Below, in pieces: positions 1 to 30,339 of a DNA stretch of 32,000 nucleotides. Position numbers and translations under genes: made by a program. Each line of letters starts with the position of its first letter. Within the stretch, counting starts at the first letter, position 1. The stretch comes from Wallemia ichthyophaga EXF-994. Its lineage: Eukaryota > Fungi > Basidiomycota. The notes under the pieces were generated by a model, which saw nothing but the letters and a program-made list of their open reading frames with translations, did no database searches and was not told the origin of the DNA. The DNA lies in the NCBI RefSeq assembly GCF_000400465.1, contig NW_008806274.1, positions 390,244 through 422,243 on the forward strand. Direction: 5' to 3'.

Positions 1-143
1 GGTCGAGGTACTTGTTGTGATCTACTCAACCGACCAACGAAAAGCTCAGTGTAGGGATCCTCAATATATCCCTTTTGTATTGCTGACAACCTGCTTAGAA
101 TTGCATCCATATCCGTCATCCTCGTCGCATCATCACTCGTCAT
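1..143 (-). CDS. PPM1: Leucine carboxyl methyltransferase 1 (PP2A methyltransferase), N-terminal part, runs off the window edge
   Basis: Not in the ORF track. Manual translation from the ATG at 143 gives MTSDDATRMTDMDAILSRLSAIQKGYIEDPYTELFVGRLSRSQQVPRP, which matches the recognisable LCMT1/Ppm1 N-terminus (TD.DA..SRLSA...GY..DP). Confidence 0.8.
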   Translation of the reverse strand, partial: MTSDDATRMTDMDAILSRLSAIQKGYIEDPYTELFVGRLSRSQQVPR

Positions 144-195
144 AGTTCAGTGAGAAGCATGCCTCAGTCCAAACCCTCATTGACCAAAAGTGATA

Positions 196-1305
196 ATGGG
201 AAACAATTCTGACAGCTCTTTGTCACCGCCACCACCTTCTATTTCACCACCACGCAAACGGCAAAAAGGCAGCGCCACAAATAAGTTTATGTCTGACTCT
301 ACGAAGCCTCCGTCCAAATCAAAGTACAGAATACCAAAATACGTTAAAGACAATTGCGAATTTGTACAACGTTTGGATACATCGCATAAGATTGGTTCAC
401 ATTGTTCAGCAGCAGGTGGGGTATATAAGGCGGTGATAAATGCGGCTATCAACGGTTCTAATGCATTTGCATTGTTTTTGAGCAACCAAAGACAATGGAA
501 GTCGAAACCTCTATCCCAAGATGACATTGATCACTTCAATAATACTTTGATTGAACACAATTACGATAGAAGCTTGATTTTGCCTCATGGCAATTATCTT
601 ATTAACCTTGGTAATCCCAATGATGATACTAGGCAGAAATCGCTTCAGTGCTTCATTGATGAATTACACAAATGTGAACAGCTTCGATTGCCTTTTCTTA
701 ATTTCCATCCGGGTTCGACGGTTGGTTTAAGTACGGTTGAAGAATGTTGTAAGAAAATCGGTGAATCTATTTCACTGGCATTGAACGAAAGCAGGAATGT
801 CACTATCCTGATTGAAAATATGGCTGGTCAGGGATCTACGGTCGGAAAAAGTTTCGATGAGTTGAGAATGATAATAGACAGCGTCAAAGATAAATCGAGG
901 GTTGGTGTTTGCCTTGACACATGTCATCTATTTGCCTCAGGATACAATATCAGCACATATCAAGCATACTGCAACACATTCGAAAGCTTCGATGAAATTG
1001 TTGGCTTTCGCTACTTGAAAGCTTTGCACTTGAATGACTCACTAACGCCTTGTAATTCAAAGAAGGACAGGCATCACAATATAGGTGTTGGATGCATCGG
1101 GTTAAACGCATTCGAATTCATCATGAACGACGACAGGCTAACTAATATCCCAATGATACTCGAGACGCCTGCCAGTGAAAATGGAGAAGATATTTGGTCG
1201 CTAGAAATTGATCTTTTGCATTCACTTCAGCGTAAAGAAGTTAATCAAGATAAGATACACCGCTTAAGAAGCTTAATTGAGAGTTATTCGAAATTTGTAA
1301 AGTAG
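196..1305 (+). CDS. APN1: AP endonuclease, endonuclease IV family, single exon
   Basis: Motifs IGSHCSAAGG, NAFALF, PHGNYLINLGNP, FHPGS, ENMAGQG, CLDTCHLFASGY, HLNDS, DRHHNIG and ILETP. First ATG is at 196; the track starts at GTG 190. Confidence 0.95.
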   Translation: MGNNSDSSLSPPPPSISPPRKRQKGSATNKFMSDSTKPPSKSKYRIPKYVKDNCEFVQRLDTSHKIGSHCSAAGGVYKAVINAAINGSNAFALFLSNQRQWKSKPLSQDDIDHFNNTLIEHNYDRSLILPHGNYLINLGNPNDDTRQKSLQCFIDELHKCEQLRLPFLNFHPGSTVGLSTVEECCKKIGESISLALNESRNVTILIENMAGQGSTVGKSFDELRMIIDSVKDKSRVGVCLDTCHLFASGYNISTYQAYCNTFESFDEIVGFRYLKALHLNDSLTPCNSKKDRHHNIGVGCIGLNAFEFIMNDDRLTNIPMILETPASENGEDIWSLEIDLLHSLQRKEVNQDKIHRLRSLIESYSKFVK

Positions 1306-1392
1306 CTTTTGCCCTTTCTGCTGTTTTATTTCCAATTATAAATTAGTCGTATACGTCAACCATCTCTTCAACTAAAACGGTCAGGTGCTGAA

Positions 1393-2474
1393 ATGCCATC
1401 TGTCAGTATCATAATCGTTTAAGTACACGTAGGACTAATATCCATCGATATAGTATTCGGAATTGATTCAAATGGCAAAAGCCAACTCCGAGAGAGGCGC
1501 ACAGCATCTTGAAGACATGAAGAGGCACAAAGAGGAGCAAGACGAGCATGCAAGAGCTCAATCAAAACGGAAGGAGGATGAGCGGAGGCGAGCCCAAGAT
1601 GAAATCTCAAAACGGCGCAAGACAACGGAGTTACGTAATAAGGAGGTCGAAGCTGATCGCTTGAATCAACGTAAGAAAGCTAGATCTATGCAAAGCCATA
1701 GTCAAAATGTTACTAGTAGTCTTGCTTCTAGGAATAGAGCATCATCTTCCGATAAAAGTACAAAACCTGCCAAGGTGTGTACGAAATCGACTTAACTACC
1801 CATTGCTTATACATGAACAGCAACAGGAAGTACTTACCCGTGAAGAAAAGCGTAACATTAAGCAAAAGAAAGATTTCGGTGAATACGGTGCGCGACAGAA
1901 ATCGAAGTCACAACAAAAACCACATCAAGACAACTACCAATCAGGGGGTCTAATTGCACTCAATACAAAGAAGAGAGATACGAGAACAATCGAAGAAATT
2001 CAACACGATTTGAAGTCAAAGAAGAGTATTGATAATGGACACAGCAAGAGTGACACCAGACAGTCTATATCTAAGAGAAAAGCACCGTCACTGCCAGATT
2101 TATCTAAAAGAAAAACTGCTTCTAAGGACTCTAAAAACGATATTGACAGCGATGATAGCATAAGTAATGATGTTGATAGTGATGGTGGTGATGGCTATAA
2201 CAGTCATGATATTTGGAGTCTATTTGGTAAAGACAAGGCTAAGTACCTCGAGCGCGATTACGACAGTAATGAGAGTGACGCTGATATGGAAGCTACGAAT
2301 GAAGACGTTATCGATGAAGAGCTTTCAAGGTAAGCCTTAAATGTTTCAGAAGAAAAACCACAGACTGAGGCGATAATCTTAAGCTCTCGTTTTGGCAAGA
2401 AAGAAGACGAAAGGGAAGCTGCAGATTTGCGACGTCATGAACTTGAAAAAAAGCGAAGGAAGCTAAACAAATAA
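1393..2474 (+). CDS. SPT2: Spt2-family histone chaperone/chromatin protein, about 309 aa; predicted exons 1393-1401, 1454-1774, 1821-2329, 2384-2474
   Basis: Three GT-AG introns join the track ORFs into one 930-nt frame starting MPSYSELIQMAK. The C-terminus DIWSLFGKDKAKY...ESDADMEATNEDVIDEELS SRFGKKEDEREAADLRRHELEKKRRKLNK resembles the SPT2 domain. Confidence 0.8.
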
Positions 2475-3124
2475 TCACCTTATGTCTCAGTTTGCTGTCG
2501 ATTCGCACGCACGTTGTAAAGTATCTTATTCTCATCCGGGCTGGAGGTAGTCTATATAAGTTTGCAGTTGGATTTCATGCTTACTTGAGGTAGAGCCCAT
2601 GGGCTTCGAAGATTATGTTCCGCGTTAAGATGTATAACATGTGAGGGATATGCCAACATTTCAAATGAAAAAATCATGTATGTCTTATAATATCCCACCT
2701 TAATTTGTACGCTCATCATTTATTTCAACATTTATTTTACTTATGCACATGTCTTATATATAGTTCTCATGTCATATTTAAGTGGTAATAGATGAAGTTA
2801 ATAACTCACTATACAAGATCCCCTTTTCTGGGTTGACTTTTAATTATGGAATAATACTTAACGATACATCCGACATAGCGGTTCTTGATTCAGATATATA
2901 ATCAAATCGGTTAAGAGAAAAAGAATAGGACTTCAAATAATATGAGACCTTCCAGTCATACCGAAAAAACCAAAAAATCTCAAAAACAAAGTATTAAAGC
3001 ACAAGGAATTCACAGCGACTCCAGAAAACTTGTTTGATTGTTAACAAAAATTGAAGAATTTTGAAATCGAAAATAACGTTGAAAAGTAAAACTACTACTT
3101 CATCGGTATTTCAAGAAGTGACCC
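1559..3124. repeat. Inverted repeat, left arm (1,566 bp)
   Basis: Exact reverse complement of 3819-5384 in every block I compared (position i pairs with 6943-i). The track gives identical translations for 1707-2333/4610-5236 and 2308-2535/4408-4635. Identity breaks at 1558/5385 and 3125/3818. Confidence 0.97.
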
Positions 3125-3818
3125 GCTTTTTTCTATCAATTCACGTATTGAATAGATCAAATTTTATTTTAGTCATGAACTATTTTTTGATGCATATGTG
3201 AATTACACGGGGAAAAGCGCTTCTTTAAGAGAAGTGTTGTTTTGAATTGTATCGGTTTAGACATCCTGATCCACCACTGTTATGACGACTTTCCAGCTCT
3301 CAGGTAAATTTTCGCGTTCCTTTTACTCGAATGTTGTTCCCCACAAAGAATTTGATATAGATGTTTTTATTTTTTCGTAAGGTAAAAAGCATTGAAATGA
3401 CACTGTTCATCGTTTAAACTTGAGTTCAACTTTCAAAAAGTTCTGAACATTGGGATAACCTTGCATATGCAAGCCGTTTATAGAAAACTTGATGGAAGAC
3501 GTTGAGTCAATAAAGGGTTGATTGATCTTAAATAGATTATTGACAACACAAAAGTTTACAGCCAAATGTAAACGAAAAAGCGAAGAGTACTTAGCTGTTC
3601 ATAGCTGCAAGACACTCGGAACTTGAGTTTATTTAAAGGATTTTATATAGGCGAAGAAATCGCGAAAGCCTACAGCTGGTAGCTTATTTTAATGATTAAT
3701 AAGCAAACGACTACGTAAATTTTTGATAATGCAGGTCTAGGACATAAACAAATGTTGTATGGATTTGGCATCTTTCATAGTTTGCAATCCTTTACCGTGA
3801 ATCCATTTAGTAAAAAAA
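3125..3818. other. Unique AT-rich spacer (694 bp) between the inverted arms; no ORF
   Basis: About 27-33% GC on sampled lines, with frequent stops in every frame I translated. Contains the 14-bp palindrome CTTGCATATGCAAG at 3460-3473. Confidence 0.85.
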
Positions 3819-5384
3819 GGGTCACTTCTTGAAATACCGATGAAGTAGTAGTTTTACTTTTCAACGTTATTTTCGATTTCAAAATTCTTCAATTTTTGTT
3901 AACAATCAAACAAGTTTTCTGGAGTCGCTGTGAATTCCTTGTGCTTTAATACTTTGTTTTTGAGATTTTTTGGTTTTTTCGGTATGACTGGAAGGTCTCA
4001 TATTATTTGAAGTCCTATTCTTTTTCTCTTAACCGATTTGATTATATATCTGAATCAAGAACCGCTATGTCGGATGTATCGTTAAGTATTATTCCATAAT
4101 TAAAAGTCAACCCAGAAAAGGGGATCTTGTATAGTGAGTTATTAACTTCATCTATTACCACTTAAATATGACATGAGAACTATATATAAGACATGTGCAT
4201 AAGTAAAATAAATGTTGAAATAAATGATGAGCGTACAAATTAAGGTGGGATATTATAAGACATACATGATTTTTTCATTTGAAATGTTGGCATATCCCTC
4301 ACATGTTATACATCTTAACGCGGAACATAATCTTCGAAGCCCATGGGCTCTACCTCAAGTAAGCATGAAATCCAACTGCAAACTTATATAGACTACCTCC
4401 AGCCCGGATGAGAATAAGATACTTTACAACGTGCGTGCGAATCGACAGCAAACTGAGACATAAGGTGATTATTTGTTTAGCTTCCTTCGCTTTTTTTCAA
4501 GTTCATGACGTCGCAAATCTGCAGCTTCCCTTTCGTCTTCTTTCTTGCCAAAACGAGAGCTTAAGATTATCGCCTCAGTCTGTGGTTTTTCTTCTGAAAC
4601 ATTTAAGGCTTACCTTGAAAGCTCTTCATCGATAACGTCTTCATTCGTAGCTTCCATATCAGCGTCACTCTCATTACTGTCGTAATCGCGCTCGAGGTAC
4701 TTAGCCTTGTCTTTACCAAATAGACTCCAAATATCATGACTGTTATAGCCATCACCACCATCACTATCAACATCATTACTTATGCTATCATCGCTGTCAA
4801 TATCGTTTTTAGAGTCCTTAGAAGCAGTTTTTCTTTTAGATAAATCTGGCAGTGACGGTGCTTTTCTCTTAGATATAGACTGTCTGGTGTCACTCTTGCT
4901 GTGTCCATTATCAATACTCTTCTTTGACTTCAAATCGTGTTGAATTTCTTCGATTGTTCTCGTATCTCTCTTCTTTGTATTGAGTGCAATTAGACCCCCT
5001 GATTGGTAGTTGTCTTGATGTGGTTTTTGTTGTGACTTCGATTTCTGTCGCGCACCGTATTCACCGAAATCTTTCTTTTGCTTAATGTTACGCTTTTCTT
5101 CACGGGTAAGTACTTCCTGTTGCTGTTCATGTATAAGCAATGGGTAGTTAAGTCGATTTCGTACACACCTTGGCAGGTTTTGTACTTTTATCGGAAGATG
5201 ATGCTCTATTCCTAGAAGCAAGACTACTAGTAACATTTTGACTATGGCTTTGCATAGATCTAGCTTTCTTACGTTGATTCAAGCGATCAGCTTCGACCTC
5301 CTTATTACGTAACTCCGTTGTCTTGCGCCGTTTTGAGATTTCATCTTGGGCTCGCCTCCGCTCATCCTCCTTCCGTTTTGATTG
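3819..5384. repeat. Inverted repeat, right arm (1,566 bp)
   Basis: Reverse complement of 1559-3124. No target-site duplication at the outer ends. Confidence 0.97.
4469..5384 (-). pseudogene. 5'-truncated identical copy of SPT2 (lacks promoter, exon 1 and the first ~35 codons of exon 2)
   Basis: Mirror of 1559-2474, including two introns and the stop codon. First in-frame ATG is at 5255 (MQSHSQ...). Confidence 0.85.
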
Positions 5385-5692
5385 TTTGATAGAAGATTAA
5401 GAGCATTGTTCTTCCAACTGAAGCTGAATAATATCCATTATAGTAACAGAACAAACATATCATGTATTATTTCAGAGATATACTAATTTCATCTCAATTA
5501 TGTCATAAGCAGGACGTGCAGGGAAACGGCGACAATCAACTAGTCATAAAACAGGATTCATGTGAAATTTCAATCGTTATAAAGTATGCAAGATTGAAAG
5601 AAGTGATAATGTATTCATATCATGCTCAAGTGATGAGTTGGTAAGAGATTGAATTGGTATCTGATTAGAATTGTTATGCAGAATCTTGATTA

Positions 5693-7668
5693 TCAATTAT
5701 TAATTTCGTCATCTAGTGGTAGGTAGGTAAAGAGTTCCATGACAGTTTTGCCATTCCGTCTAGAAAGAATGACGCATTTCTCTTCAGTGAAAGCTAATCG
5801 CCAAATAGATTCCCCTCTTTCAGAGAGATCTCTTATACGTTTGCCGGTTTCAAAGTCCCATAGCTTAATTCTACCGTCATTCCCAGCGGAAACGATAAAG
5901 CGTTCATCGAACTGTAATGAAGTGACGGAGTTACTGTGAGCATCAATCCTATGTAGACATTCATAGTTTTCTAGGTTATAAACTATGACTCTACCATCAC
6001 TACCACCAGTTACGAGAATGTTGTCGGTTAATTGTAGAGTACCAATCAGAGCCGTATGACCTTGTAACATTGCTAAGCATTTCTTCTGAGAAGCAGACCA
6101 AATTCTAACCGTATTATCCATCGAACCAGTTGCAATTTTATCGCCATTGAAAGCGATTGAGTAAATTTGATGAGCATGACCTTGAAATGTGAACAAGCAT
6201 TCACCAGAATTTAAATCCCATAGCTTTATCAAGAGAATAAGGAAATATAAGTGGTAGCTGAGGGATAACTTACTTTACTTGTGCAGTCATAAGAACCAGA
6301 AACAATTTTATCACCAGAGACATCCAGAGATCTGACAGAATGTTGATGTCCTTGCAAGATATGAATGAGAGTACCGTTTTCGATATTCCAAACTCTAATT
6401 GTAGCATCTCTTGAACCGGAAACAGCTATCGGTTTACCAGGGATAACTTTAACACATCTAATAGTAGAAGTATGACCGGACAAAGTGTGTAAACAAAGAC
6501 CTGATTCGGCATCCCAAACTCTAACATGTCTATCGCAGCTTCCAGAGACAACAATGGTACCGTTTTGACCCCAACCTTTGACAGCTCCACAGATGGATTT
6601 ACCATCGTTAGCGAAATTATTACCTCTAAAGATTTTAGAAAAGTGCTTCCTACGCTGCTTGGAAGATGAAGACGATGGATTATTAAAATCAGTTGAATTG
6701 GATCTTTGATATTGATCATCATTCAGTTGGTTAAATGAAGTTGAAGGAAAAGAGTTATGATTTGATAGTGGAGGTCTAATAAAGTCGAAGTCAAAGCCTA
6801 AACCGAACTCTTGTTTTGGAGTGTTTTGAGTTGAAGAAGAGTGAGGGGAGGGAGGGTAATTAGAGGAAGATAGGTGAGGAATGTTAGAAACCAAGACTAA
6901 ACACCAAACACCTTGAATGTGACCTTGTAAAGCACACTTCCATCTACCAGTAGTAGCGTCAAAAATGTGAATGTTAGAGTTTGACATTCCAATAATGATA
7001 AAGTTATCATCCATGACAAGGGATGTGACTACGGCATCTTCAGGGGAGACATGAGAGGAGATAAGTCTACCGCCTTTTCTCCAATTAGATTCAGTTAAAT
7101 AGGAGTGTTTAAAATGTTTCTTGTAGGAAAATTGTTGAATAGGTTGTTGAGAGGTCCAGAAGGAATTGTCGTAGTTTAAATCCAAGGAGTTTCTCCTGAC
7201 AATAGAATTAGATCTGTAAAAATTAACTCTATGTTGTAAAGAGGAAGAAGAAGGTTTATAACGATGTTTAAAGCACATATCTTTCCAATTATTTTCATCT
7301 TCGACAATGTCTCTCCACCATTTAGAGACTTGAGAGCATCTAGCGAGGGTGTTTGGGTGGTTAATGAAAGAGAGAATATGTAAGGATAATTCAAGAGGTA
7401 GTTCCTTTAAGAAATCTCTCTTAAGTCTTGGGGCTAATAAGTTGTTGGCGTGTATAACTTGAGGGATGGAGAGAGAAGGAAGGATAAAATTCAAAGCCAA
7501 GAGTTTATCGTTGAAGGAAAGGCAATTAAATTGATTAAATATGGAAGATATGTTGTCATTAGTGTGAGTGTTATAAGAGGAGGTAGTTGGAGTAGGTGGA
7601 GTTGAGGGATTTGATCTTAAATTGTTCGATTTGATGGAGATGGGCGTTGTTGATAGGTTATCGTCCAT
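5693..7668 (-). CDS. F-box/WD40 SCF substrate receptor, Cdc4/Fbw7-like, about 641 aa; exons 7668-6274 and 6223-5693
   Basis: F-box DFLKELPLELSLHILSF...SQVSKWW and multiple WD40 repeats (SGSCDRHVRVWD, SGSRDATIRVWN, TGSMDNTVRIWS). A 50-nt GT-AG intron at 6273-6224 restores the frame. Confidence 0.88.
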
Positions 7669-7697
7669 TTCTTATAAATCAACTTTATAATAAAACG

Positions 7698-8261
7698 ATG
7701 ACTGTCAACGATCGACAGCTTAGATTAATAAAAAGTCAAAATGATTTGATAATAAAAATAAATAATAAAAATTACAAGTTTCAAATAGAGGACAGTATTA
7801 GCTTGGTTTTATTAAGCAGTTTGAGTAGTGGATGTTATAGTGATATTTTACTGGAGTGGATTGCTAGCGAAGGATTACAAGTTGAATTTAATAACAACAA
7901 TTTAATAATTTTGTTCAAGTCTTCAAATCATCAAAATATTTCAAGTGTAGATTACAAGTTGGTAGACGATGATTATAAGCTATTCCAATTGAAGCCATCA
8001 AGCGTGGCATTAAGTAAGGAAACTTCAAATGATTTAGAATTGGAAGCCAGTCTACTAATTCTATCAAATGAGTTGGTACTTTCAAATGATATTCAATCGA
8101 GTCGAGTTATGAATTACAACTGCAATTTAACTAGAGGCAAACAAATAAATATAAATCCAGCCAATCAGCTTGATAATCAATTACTCAAATTATTCTCAAA
8201 GAACAATCGGCCACCACCTACGTTTGACAGAATAAACTTCATTCAATCTAATAAATTGTAA
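7698..8261 (+). CDS. Hypothetical protein, 187 aa, no family recognised
   Basis: 564-nt stop-free frame in DNA of roughly 25% GC, unlikely by chance. First ATG is at 7698. Confidence 0.6.
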   Translation: MTVNDRQLRLIKSQNDLIIKINNKNYKFQIEDSISLVLLSSLSSGCYSDILLEWIASEGLQVEFNNNNLIILFKSSNHQNISSVDYKLVDDDYKLFQLKPSSVALSKETSNDLELEASLLILSNELVLSNDIQSSRVMNYNCNLTRGKQININPANQLDNQLLKLFSKNNRPPPTFDRINFIQSNKL

Positions 8262-8288
8262 TTGTAATTCTAGTTATAAAATTTTATC

Positions 8289-9158
8289 ATGGTATCTAAA
8301 CCCACTCACACCCACTCAAACTCGCACCTCCACCACCCACTATCAATGAACACACAAGTTATTCATAAGTCAATAAAAAGTTTAAATAATCTTATAAGCA
8401 AGGATAGTTCGAATTTAATTGAAGATGTCGACTTTTTATACTTGATTATTACTCTAAACTCAATGAAATCTCATATCAACAATAAAACTTTAAACATTCC
8501 TATAAAGAACACCCTCATTGATCCAAGATCTGATAACATTTGCTTATTGGTTAAAGATCCTAAGCAAGATTCTATCTCAACCTTAGAAAAATCTAATATC
8601 AACTTCATCTCTGAAATCGTCTCTTGTCAAGAATTGAAAGGTAAATACAAATCGTTCGAATCTCAAAGATCTTTATTCTCTCAATTCGATTTATTCCTCG
8701 CTGATGAATCTATTTTGCACTTATTACCTAGATTCATCGGTAAACATGCCTTCTCATCTAACAAACCAATTGGTGTAAATCTCAAATCAAATGACTTGAA
8801 GAATCATATTCAATCTGTTATAAACTCTACTCACTACACTCCATCAAAAGGTGTCTGTCAATCTATTAAATTCTCTTCCACAAATCACACTATAGATCAG
8901 CAAATTGCAAACTTAGAAACCGTTTTAGATCATTTCACAACAAAACTCACCAATTTAAATGAAATTAAGTCTATTAACATCAAGCTATCCTCGTCTGATG
9001 CCTTACCTATTTACATCAACGACTCCTTTAAGCCAAAGACTCCAACTGAACAATTAGATAAGAGGAAGAAGTCATCCACCTCGACAAAATCAAAGTCAAA
9101 GAAACAAATTACTGGTGATAAGTCAACAAAACCAAGTAAGCCTGTTAAATCAAATTAA
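8289..9158 (+). CDS. Ribosomal protein L1 domain-containing protein (Cic1/Utp30/RSL1D1 family)
   Basis: ICLLVKDP, LKGKYKSFESQRSLFSQFDLFLADESI..LLPRFIGK, IKSINIKLSSSDALPIY, and a Lys-rich tail. Confidence 0.88.
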   Translation: MVSKPTHTHSNSHLHHPLSMNTQVIHKSIKSLNNLISKDSSNLIEDVDFLYLIITLNSMKSHINNKTLNIPIKNTLIDPRSDNICLLVKDPKQDSISTLEKSNINFISEIVSCQELKGKYKSFESQRSLFSQFDLFLADESILHLLPRFIGKHAFSSNKPIGVNLKSNDLKNHIQSVINSTHYTPSKGVCQSIKFSSTNHTIDQQIANLETVLDHFTTKLTNLNEIKSINIKLSSSDALPIYINDSFKPKTPTEQLDKRKKSSTSTKSKSKKQITGDKSTKPSKPVKSN

Positions 9159-9174
9159 GCTATTTATCATACAA

Positions 9175-9874
9175 TCATCTTAACTTTTTCTCATTAAAGA
9201 AACCTCTCAAATGGGTTGACTGCCAGTAACATGCACCCGCTATGACTATCATCTGTAAAATTGACCAGGTTATAGTTCTCTTATTCGTCATATCTGATAT
9301 CTCCCTAAATTCTACTTCTCTATCTCTTTGGAATTGCTGCTCTTTACGAACATCAATCAGCTTTGCATTTAGATCCCTTATCCTATTAGTCAATGATTGA
9401 ATGTGGTTTAAATCTGCTGATTCATCGTGTTTAATTGCACCAATTGCCATATCCAAATGAATTCTAATTGATGGATTTCCTTGATACCAACCTGTGTTGA
9501 TTGAGCTATTAGTTGATAAGCAAACTGTATGATCTCCAGCGAGGTGTGAAGTGAACATAAATGAACCTGTGGAAGGACCTTTACTATTAACAACCGGGTG
9601 CTTCTCCTCAGTCTCTTCAACTTGAATCAAAACACCAATATCATTGGCAGTAACCCATTCTTTAGTCTGTAAATTGAATTCTTCTGCTTTGTATTTACCT
9701 GTGGAACAATATATGTCACTACATAATCCAATCACAAATGCCAGACACACCACTAACAAGAGTATCAGCTGGCACCTCTTCTAAGAAGCATTTACGATCA
9801 TTGCTATCCATGTAAAAGTGCAAGCCATAAGATAATTGGAACATTGCTACTAAAATTAAAATCAATTTCATCAT
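9175..9874 (-). CDS. p24/emp24/gp25L cargo receptor, alpha subfamily (Erp1-like), 215 aa; exons 9874-9751 and 9698-9175
   Basis: Signal peptide then LHFYMDSNDRKCFLEEVPADT, GOLD domain (FTSHLAGDHTVC), REVEFR, a transmembrane segment and a C-terminal KKLR ER-retrieval motif. 52-nt intron at 9750-9699. Confidence 0.9.
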
Positions 9875-10194
9875 CGTTGTATGTGTGTGTATCGATTATT
9901 GGGCAAGCCCTGGGTTACAAAAGCCGAAAAAAAAAAAAACCATTGCTCCCTCAAAACATCTTTGTGATTGCTTGAATCTTTAGTACTACATCACATTACG
10001 ATATCATTCCTTGAGATGTTAGGATTCATCTCAGCGACTGTTTTATAGGGCTTTGTCAGCCCAGCTGTTTCGTTATTGCTTTCTAAAATTTAAGTAGAGC
10101 AAAAGCTCCTAGACATGTGTGCTGCATAAATAATGGATTAGTACTTATTCATTATACTCACGCCCAACGTCCATCATCCATCATCACCAGCATA

Positions 10195-12138
10195 ATGGGC
10201 TCAATTTATTATAAATTTAAATCGTCAAAGATCACTTCAAGGGTTAATATCGATGGTACCTCTTTATCTGTTTTCGATTTAAAGAGAGAAATCTTGTTAT
10301 CTAATCGTATGGCTATAAATAAGGGAAACGATTTCGATTTGATTTTATTAAGAGACACTCCTGGTCAAGAAGGTATTTCGTATTCTACTCACTATCCTCA
10401 CTTTACTCACTAGCTCATTCTCACTCAGAGTATCATGATGATAATGAAATGATTCCTCGTTCTACTTCAGTTTTAGTTAAAAGGTCTCCACCTAAAATTC
10501 CGAATAGAGGCTCTGCTGCTAAATACACCGCCGATGCTCCTGTCATGGCTGACTCAAATTCATCCCAACCAAAACCACCATTACCTGTTTTAGGCTCTAT
10601 GTCCAAACGTTTTGATGGAAAGGATGAAAACAAGTCACAACAGCTTCTCAACCAATCTGTTTGTTGCCTATTCATCCCTTCTTCTTCCCTCTGATCAAAA
10701 ACAGTCTGAATCTGGTCAGCAAGAATCTGAACAAGACGCCATTTCTGCCATGTTCAAAGCATCTGAACAGCAATGGGAAGAAACTCAACAGCATATGTCT
10801 ATGTAGGTAATCTCATTGTCATCTACTAATATTCAATCCATTCACAGGGCCACCCCTGTCTACACCAACATGAGGCCTCAAGTAAGAAAACCAATTCCTC
10901 AACCAACTGCTACAGGTGACTCTGCGCCGTCCACATCCCAACCTCAGCCGCAATCTCAACCCCAAGAGTCATCCATGTCCAATGCTATGCCTACCCCACC
11001 TGGCTATGTCTGCTACAGATGTGGAGAGAAAGGTCACTGGATTCAAGATTGTCCCACCAACGGTGATCCTAACTATGAGAACAAACCACGATTCAAACGT
11101 ACAACTGGTATACCAAAGTCATTCTTAAAGACTGTTGATCCTTCTACAGCAGCATTAATGACTAACAATGGTACAAACAACTCTCAAGGTGTAATGATTA
11201 CACCCGATGGTAGTCACGTAATTGCAACTCCCGACATAGCGACCTGGGAAAAATCTAGATCGATCAAATCATCAAAGCTCACTGTCAACGATATCAGAGA
11301 TTCTGAACCCAAGCTACAAGAATTGAAATGTGGCTTGTCTGGTAAACTTCTCAACAATCCTGTCACCTTGCCTTGTTGCAACCTTTCCTTCTCAGATGAT
11401 TACATAAATCACTACCTAATTGAAAATGACTTATTTTGTCCAAATTGTCATTCAAACGTTGGATCTTTAGAGAACTTGAAATCTGACCTAGAACTCAAGC
11501 AGAAGGTCATTGAGTACATCAACGAGGAGCTCCGTCTTGATAAATTAAAAAGAGATGAGAACAATAAAGACGGTGATTCTAACAACCAAACTGATTCAAG
11601 TGACGACACTCAAAAGGATCATTTCCAACAGGCTGATAGAAGGTCGCTATTTCACGATGATATTATTAAGGTGAACAAGATAATACACGACTGTCAATTT
11701 GCAATTATGGCTATATTCGAAGCACTGAAGAATAATGAGGTTAGTTTACTGTTTTGATCGACAGTTCATAGCTTACTTTCAAGTAGCTCGATGACAAGAC
11801 CAAGTACAAATTTCAAACTCAATTGGTGCAGATAAATGTAAGCAAATTCCCATTCAAACATTTTTGGCTAATCATATAACTAGCAAATCATGAACCTGCA
11901 ACAAGGTCAAGTAATGATGATGATGAATGGAATGGATCCTAAAGTCTTTGGAATGCCACTTTTACCACAGATAAGTGAGTTTGTTTATGACACTCATTGA
12001 TCACAACACTAACTACCCACACCAGATCAAAAGGAGCAACAGGATATCAATCAGACAAAAATCACAGAGCCATCTACCGGACAAAAGAGACAGAATGATG
12101 ATGATAATTACAATAATGAAAGACCTTCAAAGCGTTGA
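10195..12138 (+). CDS. MPE1: Cleavage/polyadenylation factor Mpe1 (RBBP6-like), multi-exon
   Basis: DWNN domain SIYYKFKSSK...LSVFDLKREI, PRSTSVLVKR, zinc knuckle CYRCGEKGHWIQDCP, RTTGIPKSFLK and a RING-like C..C/CPNC region. The 3' exons were joined by eye. Confidence 0.88.
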
Positions 12139-12313: not shown

Positions 12314-14050
12314 TTATACCAAGCTGGTCATTTCAATCGCACCCAGCTTCAGCAATACTTTCACAGCATTCGCGATGATTTTTTGCGAATTCTTTCTGTT
12401 TAGACAGCTGTGCTTTCATTTTTGATCTTCTGACAACTTTTCCAGGCATTTACTATAAATCATATTTAAGAAAAGCATGTTGCACAGCGTTCTAGCCGAT
12501 TTGTCAAATTTTCCCATAATCCTTAATATTGCGTAGCAGTATGAAGCATCTGAAGTGACTGTCCTTCAGTTGAGTGACTGAAAGTATTACCGCTTTACTG
12601 ATCATACCCTCTACAGCTTCAGCTAATCCTCATACAGATAACGAACATTAGCTGAGTTAAACGCGCTCGAGAAAGGCTTGGCTCATCTCAATGTCATGAA
12701 TGACAGCGACATGACGAGCAACAGATGAAAGCTTGGCAGGCAATTCCATTCTTTCGTTCTCTATATTGCACACAAACTACTCATTGAATTTAAATAAGTA
12801 ATGAAATGCTCACAGCCAGCTTGTACAATGAAACCTAAAAGTAATAGCAAGTAAGAAGCCCAAATAATCGTGAGTGTGTGCTTTTTTACTAGGTGTACCT
12901 TATTTGAGAGTTGTGCATGCGCATCTTCCAAATCTCTTTTCATAACGTGGGCTTGTGCTGCTAAATATCTAAGTACCAACTCTGTATTAGCTCTAGTTGC
13001 TTGTAACTTCTCCCTTTTGATATCCTTAATTGATAGACTGCTGGTCTGATATAATTTTCATTGATTAGCTCGACTCCTATGCTAGCATAAGACAAGGAGG
13101 GCAAGTTGACTCCAACTGGGTCTCTGTGTACAATGTAAATTAGTATAAAGGTGAATTCGAGTAGTATAATTAAAGTTGGTAATTAATAGTAGTTTTTCAG
13201 CGCATCCATTCACCTCAATCTACCAAACTTCCGTCAGGAGAGGGATTGTCACCAAGAATGACCCTAGCTCGAACCAGTTATCTTCCTTGCCTTTATCAGT
13301 AAGTAAACATTCTTCCTACAAAGCTAGCTTGGAAGATGTAGCGTCTACATGGCGACTATTGTAGACAGATTTGGCAATGAGAAGCAAACAAGGATATATA
13401 CTTGATTTCCGCTCTCATTCCTTACAGATGGTATTTCGGCATGATCTGCGGTGAGTGGTACGTAATTGAATTCTTTGTCTAGCTCGTGCATCTTGGTAGC
13501 AGAGCTCCACGCATCACCACTTACAACATCTGAGCAAGTGGATTCAGCCAAAGCAAGCAGAAGTAAGTCTGTATCGCCGTTTTTCTTTGCGATGTCTGCT
13601 CTTACCTTGAAGCAAGAGGATGGTACATCACTAATCTCAGCTGCCAGTGGAATTGATAGAACCACTCAGTGCGTTTCTTCTTCTTGGTATCAGTAATGGC
13701 ACGTTTGAGCAAAAGATGTGCGAGCCAAGAGCTCCTCGCTGATGCGATTCTTATGAGAAGTGCATATGTTTCGAAGAGGTAGTTCTCGAGAAGAGACTTT
13801 GCTTTAAGAGATCGCTGGTTTAGTTATAGAGAGTTTAAGCTAAGCCTATTCTAGAGATCATTCCTTGTGTCTGTGTGGGACCAGGCAGATTTAGACTGGC
13901 TTTGTAAGATATAATTGCGAGATAACAACAATGATGATATTCCGCGAGCAGATCGTTTTGGCTGTCTACAGAGGCAAGGAAGCTATCTGCGTAATATGAG
14001 TAAACCGCTGCAAGAGCGAATAATTGTGAATGCTGCGTGCGTCGTGCCAT
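12314..14050 (-). pseudogene. Decayed full-length paralogue of the SCC4/MAU2-like gene at 28343-30339
   Basis: Collinear protein similarity from start to end: HCCYLAIISYKASLNLPG vs HCCYLAILSYKSSLDLPG; LLKRAITD...EWFYQF; AAQAHVMKRDLEDA vs AAQVHIMRREMEDA. The 3' DNA also matches (acccagcttcagcaatactttcacagc vs acccagtgtcagcaatactatcacagc). In-frame stops at 13835 and 13820, frameshifts near 13650 and 13385, and an intron remnant at 13267-13220. Confidence 0.9.
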
Positions 14051-14516
14051 AGGTGATGGGATGATGAAATCAAGTGACGCAATGCAGTGCTCGATAAGCA
14101 GACATATGATAAAGCGCGTAGAGAATTGTGATGAGGCCTTGTTGTACACGCTTTGAGATCATTTGCGACCGCAAAATCGTGTCACAGCGAATCAATGTCG
14201 CATAAGAAAACAAGAAGACGCGGTAGAGACTGTGATACAAGCCGAATAACACGCTGTAAGTTTAATTACATTTACAAACTCATTTTATATCAAATAAACG
14301 AGGTATGTAAGTGACTGAGCCAAGACAACCGAGGTGCACGCAACCGAAACTGAGAAGTATCGCTGAGCAGTTAAGCAGGGAAAAGCACAACGGGAGGTAT
14401 CCAATTACTAAGCCTCACCTATTCAAACACACTAAATAAAATTTTGTAGTCTGACTCAATCATCTCCGATATAATCATCTTCTTCGCTGTAATCGGTCGA
14501 AACTAAAATTAAAAGG

Positions 14517-28099: not shown

Positions 28100-28181
28100 G
28101 TCGATGTAGCTCAATTGGCGAGAGCGTACGACTGAAGTTGTTGCATTCGTAAGGTTGGGCGTTCGATTCGCCCCATCGACA
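28100..28181 (+). tRNA. tRNA-Phe(GAA) with an 8-nt intron (28138-28145)
   Basis: Acceptor stem GTCGATG/CATCGAC, D stem GCTC/GAGC, anticodon stem TACGA/TCGTA with CT-GAA-G, and T arm GGGCG-TTCGATT-CGCCC. TTTT at 28187-28190 is a likely Pol III terminator. Confidence 0.95.
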
Positions 28182-28342: not shown

Positions 28343-30339
28343 TTATACAGTAAGTTGGATACTCTTGGTATACCCAGTGTCAGCAATACTATCACAGCAC
28401 TTGTGATAAAACTTAGTGTATACCTCTTGCTTTCTCAACTCCGCTTTCATATTTGACCTCTTGTAATAGTTCTCTAACGACTGACTGTATATGAGGTTCA
28501 GGAATGGCATACCAAAATTCTTCCCATTAGCCTGTTCAACCTTACCCATTTTCCTTGATATTGCGTACCCAGTTTGAATCATTTGCAGTGCCTGGTCTTC
28601 ATGTGAGTGTCTGAAAACTTCATTTAGCAGTGCAAACAGGAATGCACGTATGTAATTGTCATGTGATTGTGATGATAATGTCAATGACTGAGTGAAAAGA
28701 TGTTTCGATCTCGTTATTATACCCTTACTGAGGATCCCTTCAACCATCTTCATGATAGCATGAATGGATGGTGAGCATTGAACATATCTCATGCGCTCGT
28801 TCACAGCTTTTACAGCCTCATGATCGCATCTGTTCATTCCAACCTCTAAAGTCATCGCTGAAATCCTGGCTGTTACCTCCATCTCGTCATTCTGTAGTTC
28901 CTCTACATTGCTGCTATTCACATGAAATAAACTAGTAAATGTGTTCGCATTCTTCCCACACAATATTGCCACTGCTTCATAGTAATTCTTCGCTGCCTCT
29001 TCTTCGTTACTAGCTTGTAAAAGGAACCCTTCAAGCATTAGCAACCAAGGAGCCCACAGCTTCATCACTTTGTGCTCTCGCGCCAACTTAACCATTTCGA
29101 GTAGCTGTTCACGAGCATCTTCCATCTCTCTTCTCATAATGTGCACTTGAGCTGCAGAGCACCTGATTGCTAGCTCCACGTTCGAGCGGTCCGACTTGCT
29201 AACCTCAACTTCCGACCCTGCTTGATGATGGATACCACCTCCAATGTCATCTTTCATGAAAGCTAGTCCCTCTCTGACACAAATTAAAGATACCGGCATC
29301 GATCCAACTGGATCTTTATGCGTTATACAATTCAACACAAAGCTGAATTCTAGTATTTGTCTTTGATTCGGTGCTCGATACTTCACTTTGTCGACGCATC
29401 CGTTCACTTTCATCTAATGAGATTTGTGAGTCAACAGTGTCCACAATTTAAGCTAATTCTCACTTCAAAAAGACTTCCATGCCCACCGCAATTATGGACA
29501 AGCTCGTTTACTTCCTCCAAGCAACTCTTGGCCAATGTAGCCTCCGTGTTACGACCAGTGAAAATGGTTTTGACCATAAGAAGCACAAGGAGGATGTATG
29601 ACCGAACACCACTTTCCTTTCTGATAGACGGTTCTTTAATATCTTCATCCATTGCGTCTGGGTTGGATTGAGTACGAGTAGTCGCTTCTTCTTTCAGTGG
29701 CACATATCCAATCTCATTCTCCAGTTCCTCTATATTTGCAGCACAGCTTCTCCAATCCCCGCTGTGAGCCAATGAGCGAGCCAGCTCCACCAAAGCAAGT
29801 AAATGCAGATCGGCATCGTCATTCCTCTTAGCAGCTTCAATAACCGCTTTGAAATAATTAGTCGGATTGCTTGTGAGCTTAATAGCCAATAAATTGAATT
29901 GATAGAACCACTCCTGGCGCTTCTTCCTCTCGGCATCTTTGATAGCACGTTTGAGGAGGAATTGAGCGAATCTGAGATTCTTTGCAGAGGATATACGTAT
30001 ATGAAGTTCGTAAGCTTTGAAGAGATAGTCATCAAGGCTGTCGTCTTCGCTTGCTTTTGATAGCGCCCGGCCAGCTGTGTGCTCGGCGTCGGAGATATCA
30101 GTGGTATAGTCGTAGAGTGCTTGGCCCAGTCCCAATCTGGAGTTTAGCTCTTGCTGTGGAGCTAGCCCAGGTAAATCTAAGCTGGATTTGTAAGATAGAA
30201 TCGCGAGATAGCAGCAGTGTTGGTACTGAGAGACGAGATGCGTTTGACTATATAAAACTGCAGCAATTTCTTTACACTTGGTGTTATAGCCTTCTGCTAA
30301 AGCCAGTAGCCGCGAATGCTGCTGCCTCCTTTGTGCCAT
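28343..30339 (-). CDS. Cohesin loading factor Scc4/MAU2-like TPR-type protein, about 648 aa; exons 30339-29464 and 29413-28343
   Basis: The N-terminal pattern LLALAEGY...QELNSRLGLGQALYDYTTD..DAE...EWFYQF resembles the fungal cohesin-loader domain. A 50-nt GT-AG phase-0 intron at 29463-29414 joins the two track ORFs. Confidence 0.75.

Follow-up and report, generated by a model that had tools for sequence, protein, structure and literature searches.

A small palindrome with identical arms and a divergent centre at the SPT2 locus of Wallemia ichthyophaga

Results

Genes and features of the locus

The window, i.e. the whole 32,000-nucleotide stretch of Wallemia ichthyophaga EXF-994 DNA that was analysed, carries an AP endonuclease gene (APN1; 99% identity to W. 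ichthyophaga E3P86_02633), an SPT2-like gene, an inverted repeat with a unique spacer, and an F-box/WD40 gene (Table 1). The SPT2 exon model is the only splice combination with an open frame, matches the SPT2 family (Pfam PF08243, E 1.3e-10), and agrees with the GenBank EXF-994 'Protein spt2' (EOR04790.1) across the shared part. Codons 1-29 fall outside the repeat; the left arm begins at codon 30 (Gln), runs through both introns and the stop codon (2474), and extends a further 650 nt into non-coding 3' DNA. SPT2 exons and introns thus make up 916 of the 1,566 nt of each arm (58%), in line with an earlier reading of the sequence alone (hereafter the sequence-only reading), which had described arms that include introns and non-coding DNA. 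The left SPT2 is the only complete copy, and it is oriented toward the core.

Table 1. Features of the SPT2 locus (window coordinates)
Feature	Position	Strand	Basis or detail
AP endonuclease (Apn1/endonuclease IV family) gene	196..1305	+	Pfam AP_endonuc_2, E 1.9e-57
SPT2-like chromatin protein gene, 300 aa	1472..2474	+	exons 1472-1774, 1821-2329, 2384-2474
Left (ancestral) arm	1559..3124	+	0 mismatches to right arm; gene model; APN1->SPT2 synteny
Unique spacer (core)	3125..3818	.	694 nt, 33.6% GC
Right (derived) arm	3819..5384	-	exact reverse complement of 1559-3124; outer junction in L010, L011, L021
5'-truncated inverted SPT2 copy, codon 30 to stop	4469..5384	-	read directly from sequence
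Unique non-coding flank, right arm to F-box/WD40 stop	5385..5692	.	6 differences/308 nt between lineages
F-box/WD40 (Fbw7/Cdc4-like) gene, two exons	5693..7668	-	Pfam F-box-like + WD40; 641-aa GenBank models P0253-P0255

The truncated SPT2 copy has no ATG, is preceded by an in-frame TAA five codons upstream of the junction, and follows the F-box/WD40 gene downstream, 308 nt away and in the same orientation. The EXF-994 annotation joins the two through a predicted intron (5743-5322) into a single protein, EOR04791.1. This F-box::SPT2 fusion is confined to the 846-aa EXF-994 model and is probably spurious; the 641-aa F-box proteins in the SPT2 cluster, also considered as fusions, are not. Exact-protein look-ups returned no match for APN1 (369 aa), the F-box exon ORF (479 aa) or a 52-aa spacer ORF, nor for 8 of 10 small ORFs.

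Geometry of the repeat and its gene-free middle

A base-by-base mirror comparison of 1559-3124 with 3819-5384 gave zero mismatches, an exactness that could in part be a by-product of one collapsed consensus placed twice if the window is a short-read assembly; in the k-mer graphs of other read sets the arms are nevertheless identical or nearly so. Beyond 1559/5384 the similarity ends abruptly, and the first mismatches inward are at 3125, 3126 and 3132, so that the arm length, spacer length and junctions (3818/3819 and 5384/5385) of the sequence-only reading proved exact. This is the sole inverted repeat that a repeat search found in the whole 32-kb window (1559-3135 / 3808-5384), where the figure of 1,577 nt at '100%' consists of the 1,566 nt plus 11 positions with 3 mismatches. 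Chance cannot account for a perfect repeat of 1.5 kb.

Between the two SPT2 stops (2475-4468) there is no ORF longer than 55 aa, no Pfam match and no tandem repeat beyond trivial ones; the spacer has no ORF longer than 52 aa and no RNA family, and Rfam at E<=1 gave no match across 1-9000. The GC content of this middle is 33.7% vs 40.9% window-wide, but a coding stretch at 7.0-9.7 kb is lower still (31.9-32.6%). The description of the middle as gene-free therefore stands, as does its AT-richness relative to the window, but it is not the window's most AT-rich 2 kb. The tight packing claimed for other convergent gene pairs was also borne out, at 16 bp (9158/9175) and 140 bp (16620/16761). The idea that the spacer is the decayed inner part of a longer palindrome was rejected, its self-reverse-complement score being 28 vs 27.3 +/- 4.9 for shuffles. 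JGI metagenome scans with a spacer block conserved in both lineages (see below) and with an SPT2 coding block gave 0 matches.

Presence across strains and read sets

The inverted duplication is common to many W. ichthyophaga strains, with the same junctions. One Logan contig (L001, ERR15373361) corresponds to window positions 1559-2524 and starts exactly on the outer boundary; the junction of flank A with the left arm is spanned by L014, L015, L016, L019 and L020, and that of flank B with the right arm by L021. A-side contigs L008 (GenBank GCA_004918755.1) and L009 (SRR25393947) stop at 1606, and B-side contigs L010 and L011 stop at its mirror position, 5337, because the right-arm edge carries variants at 1567 and 1576 and k=31; an odd k, a shorter repeat and a variant at 1607 were considered for these ends and rejected. 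Collapsed-arm contigs (L017, L018, L022) begin at 1577. This is the start expected with k=31, given that the arms of that lineage last differ at 1576. Toward the centre, one observation counts against this picture: L017 continues out of the collapsed arm into spacer sequence and shows no branch at 3124/3125, where one was expected. L017 is the only contig to reach the spacer, and it starts within the collapsed arm, unanchored in unique flank. The A-side anchored L015 ends at 3112, 12 nt short of the spacer junction.

In at least 18 GenBank strain assemblies, 'partial' SPT2 proteins start with QSKRK, i.e. at codon 30, with which the repeat opens, and are located on stand-alone contigs of 1,457-1,558 nt. 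The right arm must be present in the EXF-994 reference, since the F-box::SPT2 model would otherwise be impossible. Its presence in other strains, which the sequence-only reading had wanted compared, is thus documented by junctions in several SRA runs and by these assemblies.

Ancestral state and concerted evolution of the arms

By synteny the left arm is the ancestral copy, because a sister-species contig (L007) keeps the APN1->SPT2 order of the window and shows no further SPT2 over the 2.87 kb that follow. At the syntenic position in the sister species, at least 2.87 kb of DNA is gene-free and could not be aligned; so long a gap is unusual for a genome this compact and hints that the region may matter.

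A second W. ichthyophaga lineage (S type) allowed the history of the arms to be followed. Its arms differ from those of the window at 41 of 1,549 sites (2.6%), and the same alleles occur in its left-arm contigs, its right-arm contig and its collapsed contigs. Within a lineage, the arm-to-arm differences number 0 in the window and 2 in the S type (both in the outer 18 nt), where the left and right S-type arms come from different SRA runs, each possibly an isolate or a mixture. Some 41 arm-to-arm differences would be expected without conversion, vs 0 in the window (P ~1e-18). Paralogous arms within a genome are thus closer than orthologous arms between lineages. This sharing of alleles shows that the arms undergo concerted evolution, kept identical by arm-to-arm gene conversion, with only the outermost 18 nt escaping conversion, in one lineage. 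Homogenization of the arms by gene conversion had been suggested before, and the 41 second-lineage substitutions, present in both of its arms, support it.

Divergence rises toward the centre

Divergence between the two lineages is about 0.4-0.5% in the flanks (0.42%, with no 300-nt stretch exceeding 5 differences, across 17.7 kb of the window), 1.0% in the genic part of the arms, 4.9% in their non-coding part, and 15.6% in the spacer (84% identity, 540 nt compared). The core has evolved at least 10 times as fast as other intergenic DNA in the window. The spectrum of changes is transversion-rich (Ts:Tv 35:49, with 27 A<->T changes); this spectrum and the still identical arms led us to reject repeat-induced point mutation (RIP) as the source of divergence. 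A 694-nt spacer should make hairpins or cruciforms rare, and they do not readily explain the hypervariability.

Short similarities occur at the junctions. The inner junction has 8 of 11 inverted matches (P ~0.004), and at the outer junction the motif TTTGAT[T/A]G occurs twice (P ~0.001). These similarities are weak, and the spacer is too changed for the event to be reconstructed.

Discussion

We favor, as the probable explanation, an old, species-wide inverted segmental duplication, i.e. a small palindrome, with an unstable centre and no need of a dedicated function. The 1,566-nt segment from SPT2 codon 30 to the stop, plus 650 nt, would have been copied in reverse, likely through a fold-back or template-switch replication error, and the inverted copy inserted 694 nt downstream, beside the 3' end of the F-box/WD40 gene. 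Since then, repeated intrachromosomal conversion from arm to arm has carried the substitutions of each lineage into both arms. The right copy, which lacks a start codon and presumably a promoter, would keep its frame open only because it is constantly corrected by the left copy, which is under selection. Substitutions gather far faster in the spacer and inner arms than in the surrounding DNA, probably owing to breaks and error-prone repair synthesis concentrated there, and no dedicated cellular role would be required. Palindromes of the primate X chromosome likewise combine arm-to-arm conversion with instability focused on the spacer and inner arms (PMC8327919). This primate precedent for centre instability is one of rearrangements and deletions, not of a tenfold excess of point substitutions, and the hypervariability could instead stem from a long-standing balanced polymorphism or point to a function, for instance as a centromere core.

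A literature search found no description of this Wallemia repeat. The locus places an ancestral copy, a truncated copy, both junctions, two lineages and a recombinant haplotype in less than 4 kb, which makes it a compact natural case of concerted evolution with a complete record. It also explains why SPT2 is broken in every short-read W. ichthyophaga assembly, why orphan 1.5-kb contigs carry a 'partial' SPT2 annotation, and how the F-box::SPT2 reference model came about. The climb in divergence from 0.4% to 15.6% within 2 kb toward the symmetry centre is unusual and, if mutational, would make the locus a tractable system for palindrome-centred mutagenesis.

The most interesting alternative, albeit an unlikely one, is a small regional inverted-repeat centromere, in which CENP-A chromatin would occupy the 694-nt core and extend over the non-coding inner arms (~2 kb in all), and the homogenized arms would help to define or maintain it, after the manner of centromeres in Komagataella phaffii, Candida tropicalis and S. 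pombe (imr-cc). The architecture of near-identical inverted arms flanking a unique core fits, and the middle ~2 kb has no genes, in contrast to the 16-140 bp that separate convergent genes elsewhere. The accelerated core also agrees with the rapid change typical of centromeres, and the gene-free, unalignable gap at the syntenic site in the sister species points the same way. No described Wallemia centromere contradicts the idea, our search of the literature on Wallemia centromeres and telomere-to-telomere assemblies having found nothing relevant. To our knowledge, no inverted-repeat centromere is known in Basidiomycota. If the centromere reading were true, this would be the first centromere of Wallemiomycetes and the first inverted-repeat centromere of the K. 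phaffii type outside Ascomycota, caught with one arm visibly recruited from a neighboring gene.

The centromere reading nevertheless has to accommodate arms largely taken up by a conserved and apparently functional gene, with the left one holding most of the sole complete SPT2, whose direction of transcription is toward the core. The inverted repeat of K. phaffii is, over its full length, a transcription cold spot devoid of genes (PMC5010909); here only the middle 2 kb is gene-free, and the arms bear genes. The AT content is also unexceptional, as the middle is not a GC minimum even of the 32-kb window and so does not form a GC trough of the Malassezia type there (33.7% vs 31.9-32.6% in the coding 7.0-9.7 kb). 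The prior is low, at a few percent for a given 32-kb window in a 9.6-Mb genome, and non-centromeric palindromes pair arm conversion with centre instability too (PMC8327919).

More doubtful still is a regulatory inverted repeat, in which a flip of the spacer would turn a promoter within it toward either the functional SPT2 or the dead copy (an antisense switch), or read-through from the F-box/WD40 gene over right arm, spacer and left arm would yield a long hairpin RNA acting back on SPT2. Inversion of the spacer is plausible in itself, as perfect inverted homology over 1.57 kb gives recombination ample room and naturally occurring flips are known for the K. phaffii centromeric inverted repeats (PMC5010909). 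The structure is also kept in both diverged lineages, and read-through is favored by the position of the right copy, on the strand of the F-box/WD40 gene and close downstream of it, and by the fused transcript of the EXF-994 annotation. Against this, the spacer yielded no promoter, ORF or RNA element, and its lack of conservation (84% identity) argues against a sequence-specific element. The fusion would depend on splicing at a weak donor (GTCATG) and on an intron of 422 nt, against a genome-wide mean intron length of 68 nt (PMC6738226), and population annotations carry the unfused 641-aa F-box model. A search of the literature on Wallemia RNAi found nothing relevant.

The two remaining alternatives, both of which the sequence-only reading had allowed for, are highly improbable. 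Perfect arm identity is the expected product of an assembler re-using one consensus, but an artefact, whether a fold-back chimera or two placements of one collapsed repeat, is effectively refuted. Independent Logan assemblies from several SRA runs, as well as GenBank assemblies built with another assembler, again show the outer junctions, the collapsed arm and the arm-spacer junction (the outer junctions and collapsed arm in at least 18 GenBank strain assemblies), and a chimera cannot explain why the right-arm edge of another lineage has two variants of its own. A very recent, strain-specific template-switch duplication, with arms identical for want of time, would suit the zero mismatches over 1,566 nt and the short similar motifs at the junctions, but is contradicted by the same junctions in at least 18 further strains and in a lineage differing by 0.4-0.5% in flanks, 2.6% in arms and 15.6% in spacer, the duplication being older than the split of the two lineages. 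A transposon or foldback element with terminal inverted repeats was rejected, there being no target-site duplication (1551-1558 vs 5385-5392) and no ORF or Pfam match between the arms, which are themselves a host gene in its syntenic place; a mating-type flip-flop cassette was rejected as well, as the invertible part has no gene and the window no MAT genes.

Comparison with known systems

The centromeres of K. phaffii, with arms of ~2 kb, a core of ~1 kb and a base composition that is 'not exceptional', come from a class named in only three fungi (PMC5010909). Like them (and like those of C. tropicalis and the imr-cc of S. pombe), the Wallemia locus has near-identical inverted arms, a unique core, sequence unique to the locus and an unextreme composition, and the K. 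phaffii arms are presumably homogenized by recombination as well (PMC5010909). The K. phaffii repeats are gene-free, untranscribed, Cse4-bound and present once per chromosome; the Wallemia arms differ in being 58% gene.

The Wallemia palindrome also resembles fold-back or template-switch inverted duplications in its layout of an original, a short unique spacer and an inverted copy, with one breakpoint within a gene and short imperfect similarity at both junctions. Such duplications are usually recent and often unstable rearrangements. The Wallemia repeat, in contrast, is fixed, old and maintained, with weak junction microhomology and a diverged spacer.

In the plastid inverted repeat, copy-correction likewise maintains two identical inverted copies, and the single-copy region between them can change orientation through recombination. 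Unlike the Wallemia locus, it is organellar and multicopy, with arms of tens of kb that carry rRNA genes, and it evolves more slowly than single-copy DNA, whereas the small nuclear arms of Wallemia evolve faster than their flanks.

The palindromes of the primate X and Y chromosomes share with the Wallemia locus arms that are >99.9% identical, a unique spacer, concerted evolution, a protein-coding gene in the arm, and change focused on the symmetry centre, i.e. on the spacer and inner arms (PMC8327919, PMC3723533). The Wallemia palindrome is smaller by one to three orders of magnitude (arms of 1.6 kb vs 10 kb to 1.5 Mb), lies in a haploid, compact fungal genome, and has the complete gene in only one arm. 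The centres differ in kind as well, with an excess of point substitutions (15.6%) in Wallemia, and deletions and rearrangements in primates.

Results

Architecture and gene context of the inverted repeat

A repeat search of the first 10 kb of the window returned one long inverted repeat, and a search of the full 32 kb likewise only one. In a position-by-position mirror comparison, the left arm (1559-3124) and the reverse complement of the right arm (3819-5384) showed 0 mismatches over 1,566 nt, with the first mismatches at 3125, 3126 and 3132, and beyond 1559/5384 the similarity between the arms stopped immediately; the coordinates and sizes proposed in the sequence-only reading of this DNA were therefore exact. 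The figure of 1,577 nt at 100% given by the repeat search comprises these 1,566 nt plus 11 positions with 3 mismatches.

Genes in and around the repeat
Feature	Position	Strand	Remarks
APN1 (AP endonuclease)	196-1305	+	first in gene order
SPT2, 300 aa	1472-2474; exons 1472-1774, 1821-2329, 2384-2474	+	Pfam SPT2 domain
F-box/WD40	5693-7668	-	third in gene order

The SPT2 reading frame is open in one splice combination only. Since the repeat begins within SPT2 at codon 30 (Gln, 1559) and takes in both introns and the stop codon before continuing for 650 nt more, the left arm is the SPT2 gene in its own place. The SPT2 copy in the right arm is without a promoter and the first 29 codons, and upstream of the junction its frame has a TAA five codons away and no ATG; it shares its strand with the F-box/WD40 gene, which ends 308 nt upstream of it. 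The DNA belongs to W. ichthyophaga (Basidiomycota, Wallemiomycetes): the AP endonuclease shares 99% identity with E3P86_02633 of that species, an acetolactate synthase of the window is 94% identical to the W. hederae enzyme, and the SPT2 and F-box proteins match EXF-994 EOR04790.1 and EOR04791.1, respectively, across their shared parts.

The middle of the structure (2475-4468) had been described as gene-free, and our scans of it agree: no ORF exceeded 55 aa, the ORFs had no Pfam match, no Rfam family was found at E<=1, and no meaningful tandem repeat was detected. Other convergent gene pairs in the window are spaced 16 and 140 bp apart, also as described. The GC content of the middle is 33.7%, vs 40.9% for the window, and coding DNA at 7.0-9.7 kb (31.9-32.6%) is more AT-rich still. 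A perfect 14-nt palindrome, CTTGCATATGCAAG, lies at 3460-3473, 5 nt from the point (3471.5) about which the whole structure is symmetrical; comparison with shuffled sequence gave it no significance, and it is not conserved, as the spacer of a second W. ichthyophaga lineage (S type, read from SRR2539xxxx contigs) has CTTACACATGCAAG in its place.

Several features elsewhere in the window were also recorded. The most AT-rich 2-3 kb (7000-9700, GC 30-33%) is coding, with strong GC skew, and spans the low-complexity N-terminal region of the F-box protein together with two Asn/Ser/Lys-rich ORFs (7647-8261, without a Pfam match, and 8289-9158). Broken short ORFs on the minus strand (12761-12979, 13345-13665, 13835-14149) resemble an SCC4/MAU2-like gene 16 kb away (28343-30339, minus strand), and 13650-13723 pairs with 29896-29969 at 77% in the repeat search; 12700-14200 appears to hold a degenerate paralogue or pseudogene on the same strand, a putative remnant that would account for the apparently gene-poor 11.76-14.77 kb. 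The 82-nt length of a tRNA-Phe(GAA) at 28100-28181 suggests an intron after the anticodon.

Independent assemblies break at and cross the repeat junctions

The inverted repeat is real. Among contigs from Logan assemblies of SRA runs and from GenBank strain assemblies, L001 (Logan, ERR15373361) is identical to 1559-2524, its first base being the first base of the repeat. On the APN1 side, L008 (GenBank GCA_004918755.1) and L009 (Logan, SRR25393947) stop at 1606, and on the F-box side the mirror position, 5337, is where L010 and L011 (SRR25394091, SRR25393947) stop. Over their terminal 48 nt the APN1-side and F-box-side contigs match one another in inverted orientation, with only two exceptions, 1567 (A left, T right) and 1576 (G left, A right). 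Edge variants extending to 1576 and a k of 31 place the contig ends at 1606 (1576+30) and the start of a shared contig at 1577, which is exactly where the collapsed-arm contigs L017, L018 and L022 begin. Contigs from other runs, each spanning one junction, cross into the repeat: L021 reads 52 nt of F-box-side flank and then 1,142 nt of right arm, and L014, L015, L016, L019 and L020 enter the left arm from the APN1 side. The right arm, whose presence in other strains had been put forward as a point to compare, is thus reached by L010 and L011 and entered by L021. In addition, partial SPT2 proteins starting QSKRK (codon 30) occur in at least 18 GenBank strain assemblies, built with IDBA-Hybrid from >200x BGISEQ data (PMC6738226), where the contigs bearing them stand alone and measure 1,457-1,558 nt, as is typical when a 1.57-kb repeat collapses in assembly.

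At the inner boundary, L017 (SRR25393947) passes from collapsed arm into spacer without the graph branch expected there and has GC at 3113-3114 where the window has AA; the left-arm contig L015, from a different run, stops at 3112. The perfect repeat of the S lineage may have its inner boundary some 12 nt outward of that in the window.

The arms evolve in concert

The S type differs from the window at 74 positions in 17.7 kb (0.42%), with at most 5 per 300 nt. Within the arms 41 of 1,549 sites differ, and the same S allele is present at all 41 in left-anchored (L015, L016, L019, L020), right-anchored (L021) and collapsed (L017, L018, L022) contigs, the left and right arms being read from different SRA runs, which are isolates or possibly mixtures; both window arms carry the window allele. 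Had there been no copy-correction, ~41 differences between the arms would be expected, against 0 in the window (Poisson P ~1e-18) and 2 in the S type, where bubble-popping in assembly could mask rare ones. Both S-type differences fall within the outermost 18 nt, which are seldom reached by conversion tracts. The homogenisation of the arms by gene conversion suggested earlier is thereby borne out. Exchange between haplotypes also occurs, since L014 (SRR25393958, corresponding to window 183-2369) is a mosaic with window alleles at 1607, 1913 and 2110 and S alleles at 2204, 2349, 2352 and 2353, a switch within SPT2 that is a sign of the two haplotype classes having recombined or undergone conversion. 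Collapsed arm contigs in GenBank carry amino-acid variants specific to particular strains (proteins P0257, P0258, P0263), which agrees with this.

The centre is hypervariable

L017 reads on past the arm through 540 nt of spacer. Against the window it diverges by 1.0% (9/898) in the genic and 4.9% (32/650) in the non-coding part of the arm, and by 15.6% in the spacer (84/540, with 4 gapped positions only). The two spacers are orthologous, since they align collinearly and directly adjoin the same end of the arm. Unique non-coding flanks differ by 1-2% between lineages, and elsewhere in the 17.7 kb no 300-nt stretch exceeds 1.7%. The spacer changes comprise 35 transitions and 49 transversions, 27 of them A<->T, a spectrum that excludes RIP-like C-to-T mutation. 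Candidate causes of the divergence peak are local hypermutation, in which breaks and error-prone repair would act around the symmetry centre; an old polymorphism whose forms are held apart by differing orientation; and fast turnover of the centromere type.

A sister species carries the left arm arrangement

A contig of a sister species (L007, SRR25399871) has the same APN1->SPT2 arrangement, with 79% DNA identity across the two genes. In the 2.87 kb beyond its SPT2 stop (8985-11853) we found no inverted SPT2 copy or inverted repeat, no ORF >77 aa and no Pfam match, and nothing is alignable past window position 2514. The left arm is therefore ancestral, and the duplication arose on the W. ichthyophaga branch, after the split from the L007 species. 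As L007 ends before any next gene, the gene-free gap downstream of SPT2, syntenic with that in the window, is at least 2.87 kb long, an unusual size in such compact genomes.

A fused gene model at the right arm

In the EXF-994 reference, an 846-aa 'F-box/WD repeat-containing protein 7' (EOR04791.1) runs from ...RRNGKT into the SPT2 sequence TTELRNKEV..., so the right arm must be located in the reference as in the window. The fusion requires an intron of 422 nt (5743-5322, minus strand) with a GTCATG donor; W. ichthyophaga introns average 68 nt (PMC6738226). Population annotations give an unfused F-box model of 641 aa; in the reference, the repeat has probably misled gene prediction into a fusion.

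Discussion

The inverted repeat is real, a small palindrome that is both old and species-wide, and it explains recurring assembly breaks and mis-annotations across all published W. ichthyophaga genomes. We infer that it originated by replication error: fold-back or template switching would leave a segment, a short spacer and an inverted copy, with a breakpoint inside a gene. The similarity at the apparent junctions is weak, with 8 of 11 positions matching inverted at the inner junction (chance ~0.004) and TTTGATTG followed directly by TTTGATAG at the outer one (chance ~0.001); the original junctions are not reconstructable because the spacer has changed so much since.

The palindrome is a legitimate but unproven centromere candidate, and our literature search found no account of Wallemia centromeres or of this repeat. 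Fast evolution of the core, and a gap without genes at the syntenic position in the sister species, hint at a centromere, but the arms are genic and the prior is low, and on balance we regard a centromere here as unlikely. A regulatory role, as a flip switch or through hairpin RNA, seems to us slightly less likely again. That the structure is an assembly or amplification chimera, as had been raised, is highly improbable, given that the same breaks and crossings recur in several SRA runs and that at least 18 strain assemblies have stand-alone arm contigs. A very recent duplication, the other alternative raised, is just as improbable: the same junctions in both lineages mean that the repeat predates their split, and the two lineages differ from each other at the 41 arm sites.

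An architectural parallel is found in K. phaffii, where each chromosome has one centromere, in which a core of ~1 kb is flanked by inverted repeats of ~2 kb that are all but identical, with the Cse4 maximum on the core, a coincident gene-free transcription cold spot, polymorphic core orientation and unexceptional base composition (PMC5010909). The Wallemia repeat shares the layout of matching inverted arms around a unique core, but it is gene-free in the middle 2 kb only, its arms being genic. An unstable centre is also found in non-centromeric palindromes: those of the primate X chromosome are likewise unstable in the spacer and inner arms, although the changes there are rearrangements and deletions (PMC8327919), whereas in the Wallemia repeat they are substitutions.
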